A DNA stretch of 64,000 nucleotides from Oopsacas minuta (taxonomy: Eukaryota > Animalia > Porifera). The DNA lies in the NCBI GenBank assembly GCA_024704765.1, contig JAKMXF010000297.1:299848-363847 (forward strand). Reading direction: 5' to 3'. The notes beneath the pieces were generated by a model that saw only the letters and a list, made by a program, of their open reading frames with translations, was not told where the DNA came from and made no database searches. Position 1 is the first letter of the stretch. The number at the start of each line of letters is the position of its first letter. Made by a program: the position numbers and the translations under genes. Below are positions 37,314 to 52,300 of the stretch, piece after piece.

Positions 37314-40300
37314 CTGAAACAATGCATTAATTGACGTACTTACTTATTCATTACATAATTAATAATTAACTTATTAGCTTCAATGTATCACTCTCATAAA
37401 CAAAAAGTATGTGATTACTTCCTGGAGGGAAAATGTAAGTACGGAAACAAATGTAAATTCTTACATCCAGATTCCAGCTCAAAGTCCCATACACAAAGTG
37501 GGAATTATTCAAATCAAATTTATACCTCTAATCGATATGCGTCACTAAGCCAACCAGCTGTAGCTACAGACTATTCTAAACCGGGATCTTTCTCGTCAAA
37601 AATTCTGCAAAACACAAGTGGGCCGGTAACCGATAATTTTCAAAAGAGTCCTTTCCAAAAGGCAAGCTCCTACCCCTTCAATAATACTCAACAACCGGGA
37701 TCTGTAACTGGGAGTGATGCCACTCAGAAGTTGCCGACTGGTTTAGGATTGAACGAAACTAAATCTCAGTCTAGCCATGAAAGTTATTCATTATATGACT
37801 CTTTATATTCCAGGGTATCCGATCTGACCAAAGAAGAGATTGATGCGTTCAAAGGGCAGAGCTTCGTAATGGGAAAGATACCAATAAAACCACCTCCCAA
37901 AGAACTTTGCTATTAACGAATTAAATGAAAGTAAATGATATTCAGATATTGATTGTAAGAATTAATTATTCCCATTAAAGCATAAATTCTTCAAATCTTC
38001 AGATGTACTCGAGGTAGGCTAATTACATGCTTAACATGAATTTAGTGTTTCACTTATGTATATGGCGTTATGTATTGAAAGAATTTGTTGAGTAATATTG
38101 TGCATATACAGAAAGTATATCATGAAGTATTAGGAAATTTGGTTATACTTCTAATATTCCAAATTTCAGAGGCTTGTCCTTTAATGACGAATATTCATAA
38201 ATGAAACTAAAGTTATATATTGTCTTACAGCTGTATATATTATGTATGCATGTATAGAGTGCGTATATTTCTATAATACTCCACTAACAGCTAGTTTTAG
38301 GGGAGATAGCTTGTAAAGATAACCTTACATAATCAAAAGTTATGACAAGATTTTTATCAAATGAAACGTTGGCTAAAAAGATCGTCTAACAGTTCAGATG
38401 GATACAACAGGTGCATGGGGTAGACGAAACAAATATCGTTGGTAACTATGTAACGCATTGGACTAATTAATTACTATAATTACTATTTTGTGCTAAAATA
38501 AAGAATGAATCCCTGCTGGAATACGTACAAATAAACAATCTGTTGTTATGAACTAATCGGGCCTGACTGAAAGTTATCTGCTACTTAAATAAATAATTAC
38601 AAAGTAATTACATTCTGAATGAGTGATTAACGAATCTAGAATAATTTCATTGTACGTAATTTGCAGGAAGATATTAGACTGAATGCGATACACACACAAT
38701 ACTAATTATACTCTACTTTGAATTAAATCAGTTTCGAGAAATAAACTTTTCTTTATAACAAAGATAATGAGCATTGCATTTGGGTTAGCAATGTCAACTG
38801 TCTAAGAATTCCAATTTTAATATTAGAGATAAACAATGCAGAAATACAATAAAGTAAGTGAATATAGAATATACTTTCAATGTAATCAGCTATATTATCG
38901 TATTAATGCTTGGAATACATATCTGCTATAATTTTTATCTCAATCGCATCTGAAACAATCTCAACAAGAGAAGGTATAATACTGCAGAATGCTAGTACAT
39001 ACCAAAACGTATCACAATTCCATGCTTGTGCTTGGAAGAATAGTAGAAGTATACAAGCAGTAATATGGAGAAATGATGATATTAAAGATACTGAAGAGTT
39101 GAACAGAGACAGTCCTGAGAAGAATCCTGCATACTCTATTAGTAACAGAGCTAGCATTAAACACAATCCAGCGACCAGCTGTACATCTTTTACTCGATAC
39201 ACTTCTGAATCAGCTGTGACATCTTCAGGTATACATGATAATAGGTTGGGCTCTCTAGACCAGAAAAGTGATAGGGTCGTGATCAGGTGAACTGTGAGTG
39301 ATAAGAATCGCGTAGGGATAATCATTAAGTATATTTTATCTAATTCAAAAAGCACATAGTAAATAATCTCATTTATGACGTATTTCACCGGACGTTAAGT
39401 GTATGTAGCCGTACAATAAATTTCAACGAAAAATTCATATATTCATACACTCGTGCTGCAACTCATTTTGAAAATAATGAATCATCTACCGTAAGATCAG
39501 TGAATAATATCCTAATCAACTTAATAACAACGAACAAGCAATATTTATACTTCCTTTATAAAAGTTCACTTCATTAAAAAATAGAATATATCCGTTTCTT
39601 AGCGGACATTATCATATGTATTGGACATGAGTATAACAGCTAATAATTTATCCTAGAATCGGAGATTAACACATCTACAAATGTATTGTCTGTAAGATAC
39701 ATCAGCGTATCAACGTGTTGTTTCAACTCAACTGGTTTAATAATCACAAGATTATTTATCAATGATTAGATAAGATGAATTAACCCACTGACACTACAAC
39801 ATGATATTACTTAACCTCGATATATGTAGCAAGCTAATCTCTACACTGAGATAACCACATTAATTAATACTATGCTTCTATATTGGTTTGTAATTACTTG
39901 TAAAAGGCGTGTTTCTTGTCTAGTATACCTCCAGTAAGTAATATTAAATTGTGTAATATTTTAACCGTAATATTAGCAAATTTATTAAATTCAATGATTA
40001 TTCAATAATATTTTCACTGAAAAACGAATATATAAACGATGATGCAACGAATTTATTATTAACAAATTAGTCTACTCTGAAATAATTTTTTTAGATCCGT
40101 GTTTCCATTTTCGACGTACAGTGTGTGGTTATCGCTTAAAAGAACATCCTTGGGAGTAGGAAATATGTTCTTATAACCGGTGTATTTTATACAAGAGTAT
40201 ATATGAGCACTGTTTTCCAGGGGATGATTCTTATATTCGATATGTTCTTATAAGCGATGCCCACTGTATTGAAAATAAGCTTGATGTTATTTTTATGTAT

Positions 40301-49300: not shown

Positions 49301-52300
49301 CATTTTCCGACGCTGGTAGTCTAGATTCCAGACTCGATTCTCTTGAACCTCAAGCGAAGGAGAGGAAGGCATCTGTCCTACGAGGGTTTATAAATGCTAC
49401 TCGTAGCAAAATAAATCTGGACAGCAAACTGGATAGAGAGAAATCCAATACAGATCCCTTAAGGAAGAAGCTTAGACGGTCTTCCTCTGCCAAGGCTGTG
49501 AAGAGCGAGATTCGCATGGATACAAATACCGATTTCATCAGAAAGAACTCGACTTCGTCAAAATTCGGCAAGAAAAGGAAACCCAGTCACTTAGAATTGC
49601 AGCAAGGATTCAATATGAAGGGGTTTGACAATTTTATGATGTACTAAGCGATTTTATGAATCAGTATTATGTCGAATAAATATACATTATATCATATACC
49701 ATATTCATTAACCATGTGTTTCATTGTGAATTATTAATATAAAATTCCGTAATAATATATGGAGAAATCCATGAATGATTAGTGAGTACCCACTAATCCA
49801 TAGTATTAATCATATTTACTAAGAATTAGAATGTTTGTATTCTCTCTACTCTGCATTGTATTGCTTCTTCCCTTCAGAAGTCAAACTCACGCCCTCTATC
49901 CTATAACTAAAATAGTTCCCTCACAAAGATACGCATTTCTACCTTCTATAAACTGCACTACACAACTGGACTCAATACCTTGTTCTGAGTACAAACAGTG
50001 TCTTACCTGCACAGAGATCACAACAGATAATTGCCATTTTGGAGATGATACTGATGCAAATTGTTCATATTCAGACACTCTCAAATGCAGTGGAGATAAA
50101 TACTCAATGAAGAGAATTCCTTGTAAGTATTGCTACCAGTTAATCAGCCTATCTGTATCTGTACAATTCCAGGATCAACAACCAGCACACTTGAGGATGG
50201 GTATTGATTATGAGTGCGCTAACTTTACTAACAATGATACTTCATCCTGTCCTTCTGTAGCCACTCCACGAGCTCTATATCTGTCACAGTGTAGGGTACT
50301 ACCTCATGTGGAATGTCTAGGCAAGCGAATATTCTTTGTACAGCGGCCTTGCAAATACACTTCTGGCTACAAATGGAGTACAGCGTTCATTCTGAGTGTA
50401 CTGTTAGGTGGGCTAGGGATAGACAGATTCTATCTGCTGCACTGGCGTACTGGTTTGGGAAAGCTTGTATCGTTCGGAGGGCTGGGGGTCTGGTCCTTGC
50501 TCGATATACTACTCATTGGTACCGGATTCTTAAAACCTGCTGATGGTTCTCTCTACGAGTAATGGAGTGTTCATTTAAATTGATTGTATAGAATTTATAG
50601 AAGATTCTTTGATTAGAATACTTTCTCATTGATATTATCTGATATGATACAAACTGCTTTTATACGTAGTAATGACGTATTAACAAGTTTTGACCTGGTG
50701 TTAATAATTTATAGTACTTAGCCTAATAAGATTGTCTTAAATTATTTCGAAAAGTTTCCTCTAACTTCTAATAGAAATGTAACAATTTTCATGAATAAAT
50801 ATTAGAAAAAGAACAACACAATAACAAATATATTAGATATGGAGGAGAGTGATGCTGTGTTTGAAAAGCTCTACTGGATAAGACAAGGAGTTTCTCTTGT
50901 CCTCGGAGTTGTGTGGGGGGCTGTCCCCCTCACAGGGATATTCGCAATATTGGGTTATCTTGCTTTAATATCAGCTGTTGTGTACATATGTAGTGTTAAG
51001 ATTGAGAATGTAGATATAGAAGATATGGGAGGAATACAAGAAGTCTTGAAGGATGGCTTGATGACTGGATTTGGGATGTTTATGATTACATGGATTATTA
51101 TGTTCACTTCTTTGCATTCTTAAAATATTATTAATTGTGTTTCTAATTTACTTTTGTATTAGTTAGTACTGGGCGAATTCGTGAGAATATAAATACAATA
51201 AATACGTATATTGGGCATATATAAATAGTTAGTAATTCAACTGACTGACCTCGTATGTAGTGTATGGGACAAGTGAGTCTATAATGAGCTCTCTCGGGAT
51301 TGCATCCACTACTACCTCCTGAGTAAGAGAAGGGGTTGCTAGAATCGCTGTATAGCGTATGACGTAGGACAGGACTGGACTTCCTCCATCCTCTTCCATT
51401 GTCCAGTTGAGAAAGAGAGATGTGGTATCAGGGGAGGGGGGAGTAGAGAAGAGAGGGAAGAGAGATATGATCTGAGGTGGAGCAGGAGGGGAAAATACGT
51501 TGATGAGTACGTGGCTCTCTGAACTACCAGCTACGTTACTTCCCTACACAATATAATAGCTTAATTGAGTCCTCCGCTTAGCGTATTAATAATAAATAAT
51601 TATCAAATAACTATTTGCATATACGTATGTATGTCCACCGTTCTGATGTCAAGTAAATACACTATCTCTCAATCTAATAATATGTTTTGCATAGAATGCT
51701 AGCACTGAGATCTAAGCTATGTAAACTAACTCTCTCGTTTGAGTTTGCAAATAAGAATTTGTTCCAATTCAGTACTCAACCTAAACTGAATGAAATACAG
51801 ACTAAATCTGAAGACCTAGATACCATGATAGACAAGAGGAATGATGAAATATTAAATTCCATGAAGTCACAAGGGTTACCAGAATTCCTCACTCCACATC
51901 AAACATGGGTATACACAATGGAGAGTAATACAAAAATGAATAAAATAATGGTGTTAGACCCAATCGTATTCAATTTCAATCCACGAATTGACATACTGAA
52001 TGACGTAGTACGGTGGGAGAAAGAATGTTTACGCCCAGGAAATGAAAGCCAAAAGTCCCGTGCAGAGAAGAGAGGGAGCGGACGTAAACCCTGGCCCCAG
52101 AAGGGTACAGGTAGGGCTAGACAGGGGAGTGTACGGGCACCTCACTTTATGGGAGGGGGTAAGGCTCATGCGATAAAACCTTCAGATCATAGCTATAACT
52201 TGCCTAAAAGATTACAATGCCATGGAGTGAGTACTCTATTCACTCTCAGACATCTACAGGGAGATATGATTGTTGTAGACAGATTGTTACCAGAACCTGA

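Follow-up and report, generated by a model that had tools for sequence, protein, structure and literature searches.

A predicted Ig/FN3 receptor gene of the sponge Oopsacas minuta with nine complete genes inside one of its introns

We analysed a stretch of 64,000 nucleotides (nt) from the glass sponge Oopsacas minuta (GenBank assembly GCA_024704765.1, contig JAKMXF010000297.1, positions 299,848 to 363,847 of the forward strand), referred to here as the window; adding 299,847 to a window coordinate gives the record coordinate. The minus strand of the window from 59516 to 33864 is predicted to be one 12-exon gene for a type-I membrane protein, with nine complete genes lying within its intron 6, and we assign this reading a probability of roughly 0.88. 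A preliminary description made from the letters alone had proposed that a housekeeping cluster sits inside one intron of a cell-surface receptor. That proposal now finds support in an intact 12-exon frame, the gap-free completion of the FN3 domain that the intron divides, the conservation of splice sites, phase and gene set in related sponges, and purifying selection.

The predicted host gene and the FN3 domain divided by intron 6

The 12 exons of the host gene run from an ATG at 59516 to a stop at 33864 and give a 4,011-nt frame with a single terminal stop, encoding 1336 residues. The product is predicted to comprise a signal peptide, five Ig and five FN3 domains, a stalk rich in Ser and Thr, a single membrane span and ~210 residues of tail. 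In this model, which was built with GT-AG sites only, all 11 introns are GT-AG and 9 of the 11 are phase 0. The exons and intron 6, all on the minus strand, are as follows.

Exon 1, 59226..59516: start ATG (shared with public model (a), below), signal peptide, Ig1 to strand F
Exon 2, 57402..57717: Ig1 strand G and Ig2; orthologue in locus L011 (below) 71% identical, with equal boundaries
Exon 3, 56964..57220: Ig3
Exon 4, 53757..54026: Ig4
Exon 5, 53208..53429: Ig5 to strand F; ends YTCR, then gtaggt
Exon 6, 51250..51543: Ig5 strand G and FN3-1 strands A to F; donor GTCAGT
Intron 6, 37314..51249: 13,936 nt, phase 0, GT-AG
Exon 7, 36954..37313: rest of FN3-1 (strands F to G) and FN3-2
Exon 8, 36481..36900: FN3-3 and start of FN3-4
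Exon 9, 35560..36219: rest of FN3-4, FN3-5, start of Ser/Thr-rich stalk
Exon 10, 34667..34967: stalk and transmembrane helix
Exon 11, 34278..34612: cytoplasmic tail
Exon 12, 33864..34148: tail end and stop codon (stop shared with public model (d), below)

Exon 6 (51543-51250) has gtgtag directly upstream and ends with the residues PYTTYE followed by gtcagt, and the first base of exon 7 (37313) comes directly after tgtttcag. Both boundaries of intron 6 (record positions 337161 to 351096) are phase 0, and the spliced junction would read TACACTACATACGAG from exon 6 followed by GTACAAATCTACGCA from exon 7. The intron cuts the first FN3 domain within strand F, with both splice boundaries as the preliminary description had given them. 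In Pfam, exon 6 matches positions 13-63 of the 84 in the fn3 profile, the match ending at the last residue of the exon, and the next complete fn3 in exon 7 begins at residue 29, which leaves 28 residues for the completion of FN3-1. With a local FN3 hidden Markov model (HMM), exon 6 likewise covers model positions 30-91, and the opening residues of exon 7 cover 89-109. When the joined exons were compared by BLASTP with 149 unrelated multi-FN3 proteins, 537 of the 579 alignments that cross the junction were gap-free within 8 residues. The joined exons also give the seven strands of an FN3 domain (PF00041), with Y-x-V-x-V-x-A-x-N-x-x-G over strands F to G.

A six-frame scan of 36900-51600 with the FN3 HMM returned only the exon 6 and exon 7 pieces (best other match, E = 2.1), so the division of an FN3 domain across intron 6 is not a chance effect; the scan also upholds the earlier statement that no other FN3 exon lies in the interval. 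A tblastx comparison with related loci found conservation confined to the nine nested genes and to exons 6 and 7, and no hidden conserved exon. It is thus well supported by sequence that exons 6 and 7 flank one intron of one receptor gene. Other host introns also fall mid-domain: Ig1 and Ig5 are both cut between strands F and G, and the match of the I-set profile to exon 5 (positions 10-75 of 90) halts at the end of the exon. Introns inside domains are usual in NCAM- and L1-type genes, and the position of the split within FN3-1 is therefore unremarkable by itself.

Several observations weigh against a single host gene. No RNA read across 51250/37313 was seen; the four runs used in the RNA search, whose kind had not been specified, were DNA, as recognised by their Nextera adaptor ends and by contigs continuous through introns. 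Protein searches with exon 7 gave no transcript-derived fragment spanning the junction. In a search of 1.84 billion representatives, giant multi-FN3 proteins dominated and the only close match was a 133-amino-acid (aa) open reading frame (ORF) fragment from a relative; this search also missed the genome's own 783-aa model and is uninformative about full-length orthologues. In a word-index search, exon 7 matched just three ORF fragments, all of them from ENA assemblies and none derived from a transcript. The link between exons 3 and 4, which falls at a domain boundary, is proposed only from phase, a missing start codon and collinearity. Finally, the GenBank models of GCA_024704765.1 are drawn as four separate genes.

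The nested genes and the public gene models

Intron 6 holds nine complete genes between 37383 and 51123, wholly inside 37314-51249 and thus between two host exons. Each is a single ORF, eight lie on the plus strand, antisense to the host, and TMEM107 alone lies on the host strand, so that ORF, Pfam and PDB matches agree with the earlier count of nine intronless genes, eight of them antisense. Their coding sequence amounts to 5,940 nt (43%) of the 13,936-nt intron, with the NUP42 ATG 69 nt from the exon 7 acceptor and the RAB5IF/OPTI stop 126 nt from the exon 6 donor. Family assignments for seven of the nine ORFs came from Pfam, from PDB sequence search and from precomputed Pfam matches to the orthologues and the public model. 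The preliminary description was right about nine genes in one intron but understated the scale of the locus, as two more host introns hold MRPL4 and actin. The eleven genes are as follows.

NUP42, 37383..37916, plus strand: 177 aa; zf-CCCH and C-terminal Gle1-binding motif (Pfam, PDB sequence search)
TMEM107, 38903..39325, minus strand: 140 aa; Pfam match; only nested gene on the host strand
Orphan gene 1, 40892..41356, plus strand: 154 aa; predicted helical
NSE1/NSMCE1, 41986..42651, plus strand: 221 aa, single ORF; Nse1 and RING-like domain
ISY1, 44447..45283, plus strand: 278 aa; Isy1, splicing factor
NME5-type gene, 45466..46101, plus strand: 211 aa; NDK and Dpy-30
Orphan gene 2, 48286..49647, plus strand: 453 aa; predicted disordered; conserved in relatives, dN/dS 0.08-0.19
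TM2-domain protein, 49831..50562, plus strand: 243 aa; TM2 domain
RAB5IF/OPTI, 50839..51123, plus strand: 94 aa; Pfam EMC6 family; match to 7tut_9, E = 6e-21
Mitochondrial-type ribosomal protein L4 (MRPL4), 51696..52586, plus strand: intronless, antisense in host intron 5; Pfam Ribosomal_L4, E = 3.7e-36
Actin, 55528..56658, plus strand: intronless, antisense in host intron 3

The host gene thus contains 11 genes, all intronless and 10 of them antisense, and the host exons occupy the spacers of this eleven-gene array. Under random orientation, the chance of at least 10 of 11 being antisense is 12/2048; the share of single-exon transcripts in the O. minuta annotation is about 60% (Table 1, PMC10282587). 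Because the ORFs are intact with full-length family matches, have orthologues in the related loci and show low ratios of nonsynonymous to synonymous substitution (dN/dS; 0.04-0.19 for the three nested genes measured, ISY1 and the two orphans), the nested genes appear to be functional and independent. Orphan 1, with the N-terminus MGSNLS, a consensus for N-myristoylation, is kept in all relatives at a dN/dS of about 0.07 and is on these grounds a real gene without an assigned family. Neither orphan has a Pfam match, and atlas searches with them gave no usable lead, with scores below 0.9. Rfam and tRNA scans of 33000-60500 found nothing.

In place of a single host gene, four minus-strand models are drawn in the public annotation of O. 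minuta, a splitting of the host by predictors that the preliminary description had anticipated.

Model (a), 56931-59516, minus strand: 298 aa
Model (b), 53019-54933, minus strand: 238 aa
Model (c), 51229-51620, minus strand: 107 aa
Model (d), 33864-37351, minus strand: 783 aa

If this annotation is right, the Ig block, the 107-aa exon 6 product and the 783-aa FN3/transmembrane product would be separate genes flanking a housekeeping cluster. Such an arrangement agrees with the models as drawn and with the lack of junction RNA among runs that were in fact DNA, but we regard it as highly improbable. Taking the true exons and reading through a true, conserved donor to the first stop yields every model length exactly, and models (b), (c) and (d) additionally need invented first exons of 36, 9 and 8 nt, respectively; in model (d), VQIYAR would be lost through a cryptic acceptor within exon 7. 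The separate models would also start and end inside domains, with the Ig5 match stopping at 75 of 90 (exon 5) and the FN3-1 match at 63 of 84 (exon 6). No in-frame ATG precedes exon 7, and the 783-aa protein would be without a signal peptide. Past the exon 6 donor, the sequence is not conserved and stops are met at different places in each species.

On the single-gene reading, the annotation would be corrected by replacing four O. minuta gene models with one 1336-residue Ig/FN3 receptor. Host splitting probably recurs wherever a nest sits in an intron, which matters for gene-content claims on the O. minuta genome. Several Ig-superfamily junction proteins are listed as absent in the genome paper (PMC10280926), and fragments of this kind would be difficult to recognise in its searches. 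As a speculative corollary, which we hold to be rather unlikely, predictor-split hosts may have inflated the list of missing genes, for example of Ig-FN3 adhesion receptors.

Of ten nested proteins looked up in NCBI, nine (eight from intron 6 and actin) are present letter for letter, and NSE1 differs. The public NSE1 model is spliced (42010-44374) and encodes 225 aa over 2.4 kilobases (kb), compared with the single ORF of 221 aa at 41986-42651. Since the 221-aa ORF contains the Nse1 and RING-like domains whole and fits the single ORFs of the relatives (221-229 aa), the public NSE1 model is probably wrong.

Two further features border the host. An intronless MGAT2 gene (32158-33516, plus strand) converges on it, leaving 348 nt between its stop and that of the host (33864). 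Immediately upstream of the host gene, two adjoining ORFs of 84 and 259 aa (61553-62587, minus strand) resemble a Tc1/mariner-type transposase with a frame break.

Conservation and continuity of the locus

Homologues of ISY1 with 75-90% identity gave access to comparative loci in five ENA assemblies. The preliminary description had proposed a comparison with related sponges for the same intron and nested gene set, and both were found in five loci of four other assemblies (L001, L003, L004, L005 and L006), with donor, acceptor, phase, nine-gene order and strand as in O. minuta and with orthologous introns of 14.9-19.1 kb. In a sixth locus, L002, only the genes from NUP42 to NME5, the first six, fall within the 10-kb flanks. 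In the relatives, a GTYAGT or GTTTGT donor and a YAG acceptor sit at codons identical in position to those of O. minuta; synonymous changes are present in the exons, and similarity stops at the splice site. Relative to these species, dN/dS is 0.08-0.13 for exon 6 and 0.04-0.10 for exon 7, with synonymous divergence (dS) between O. minuta and each relative ranging from 0.9 to above 2, that is, with synonymous sites near or at saturation. The comparison supports strong purifying selection on both flanking exons.

The 5′ part of the host is conserved as well. Locus L011 is collinear with O. minuta over exons 1-6, including the nested actin and MRPL4 genes, actin again lying between exons 3 and 4, and conservation ends at every exon boundary. 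MRPL4 is found at the matching position in L003, L005 and L006. We rejected tblastn matches that seemed to continue beyond the exon 6 donor in L003, or to begin ahead of exon 6 in L006, as chance runs through AT-rich or stop-containing sequence. L005 and L006, two contigs of ENA ERZ25072730, give this assembly two copies of the complete locus, which are of high identity but differ in the called length of orphan 2 (538 versus 453 aa); they are probably two haplotypes.

Another possibility is that the host is a single gene whose long intron is rarely removed, in which case transcripts polyadenylated prematurely within intron 6, perhaps at the TMEM107 signal, would make a truncated secreted Ig protein the main product and the full-length receptor a minor one. 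The intron does contain a nested gene on the host strand that has a 3′ end of its own, read-through of the exon 6 donor meets a stop after 6 codons, and interference by nested genes has been described in other animals (PMC3192792). Nevertheless, exons 7-12, which strong purifying selection maintains in all relatives, have no start of their own and must therefore be expressed through exon 6. In addition, a product ending in an FN3 domain without its last strand would probably not fold. We consider a predominantly truncated product very unlikely.

It is scarcely credible that the locus reflects an assembly artefact or a recent insertion, with a 14-kb block wrongly or newly placed inside a receptor exon. 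Intron 6 does exceed the mean intron length of O. minuta, 341 bp (PMC10280926), about 40-fold, and there is one single-base discrepancy with DNA reads: the contigs of all three same-sample DNA runs carry one extra G after 38299, between NUP42 and TMEM107. As the site is intergenic, this is probably a single-base error in the assembly. Against an artefact stand the recurrence of the layout in the five loci described above at divergence near or at saturation, canonical splice signals exactly at both intron ends and the continuity of DNA contigs across the acceptor side. Contigs of independent DNA runs are continuous over 34919-39700, a contig from a related species (~93% identical) spans exon 7 and NUP42, and the window contains no N.

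Outside the glass sponges, ISY1 of the demosponge Dysidea avara (L010, OY787656.2) spans 9 kb and must have introns, as its annotated protein is not one continuous ORF. Its neighbours are unrelated to the nest and encode a MYST acetyltransferase, a lipase and a proteasome ATPase. The intron-bearing gene and its different surroundings imply that the intronless state of ISY1 and the nest were either derived in glass sponges or lost in Dysidea.

Expression, origin and relation to known systems

With exons 6 and 7 in one gene, RNA polymerase II would transcribe the host through the entire nest, the spliceosome would join exon 6 to exon 7 by ordinary GT-AG signals, and each nested gene would be transcribed from its own promoter. 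The antisense orientation of 10 of the 11 nested genes would keep their polyadenylation signals off the host pre-mRNA; TMEM107 alone shares the host strand, and its polyadenylation signal would have to be read through. We propose that the arrangement arose in the glass-sponge lineage, with gene order and splice sites kept while synonymous sites neared or reached saturation. The antisense and intronless biases could fit either selection against sense polyadenylation and splice signals in a host intron or the capture of a pre-existing co-oriented block. Because a rearrangement inside a block that lies between the exons of a selected antisense host breaks the host, multi-gene nests might act as synteny locks, and widespread nesting might be a cause of the unusually stable gene order reported in glass sponges; we think this rather unlikely and offer it as a speculation. 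Well defined and deeply conserved, with eleven genes, one of them on the same strand, inside one predicted transcription unit in a very compact genome, the locus is a suitable test case for how a host and its nested genes can be expressed without mutual disruption.

Like the Ig-FN3 receptors L1CAM/neuroglian, DCC/neogenin, Robo and the LAR-type phosphatases in their ectodomains, the predicted host product has a run of Ig domains followed by FN3 domains, one membrane span and a tail, but its count of five Ig and five FN3 domains matches none of these families. L1CAM/neuroglian proteins have six Ig and five FN3 domains and an ankyrin-binding FIGQY domain in the tail (Pfam Bravo_FIGEY), and DCC/neogenin proteins have four Ig and six FN3 domains and a Neogenin_C tail; the host has five Ig exons, and its cytoplasmic tail exons match no Pfam family at E up to 1. 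The best solved-structure matches of its FN3 exons are to LAR-type phosphatases, titin, sidekick and contactin. We therefore rejected assignment to a named receptor family, as the FN3 matches are generic and no orthology can be claimed.

Multi-gene nests are known from other animals. Intron 27b of human NF1 reportedly holds EVI2A, EVI2B and OMG. These genes and the nested genes of ctenophores (PMC8527503) resemble the O. minuta nest in being complete, short and mostly antisense in one host intron, and in NF1-type bilaterian and ctenophore nests each nested gene has its own promoter and 3′ end. NF1-type hosts differ in belonging to large genomes and in having introns that measure tens to hundreds of kilobases, whereas O. 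minuta intron 6 is 43% coding with margins of 69 nt and 126 nt.

The closest parallel is the glass sponge Aphrocallistes vastus, in which 2,432 nested genes (12.4%) have been reported along with high microsynteny among glass sponges (PMC10282587), so that the abundance of nested genes in this group, which the preliminary description had already mentioned, is published. The same paper counts only 83 nested genes in the O. minuta annotation, a number that it attributes to annotation settings as the probable cause; the O. minuta genome paper, in which the mean intron is 341 bp, does not mention nesting (PMC10280926). As at the O. minuta locus, the A. vastus nests belong to a compact genome of mostly single-exon genes, many of them in introns and conserved between glass sponges. 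The A. vastus report gives counts and the glassin example and does not describe the O. minuta receptor locus, which differs in having nine genes in one intron, eleven in one host and a host demonstrably fragmented in the public annotation. We conclude that the O. minuta locus adds a new example, of unusual density, to the gene nesting already published for glass sponges.

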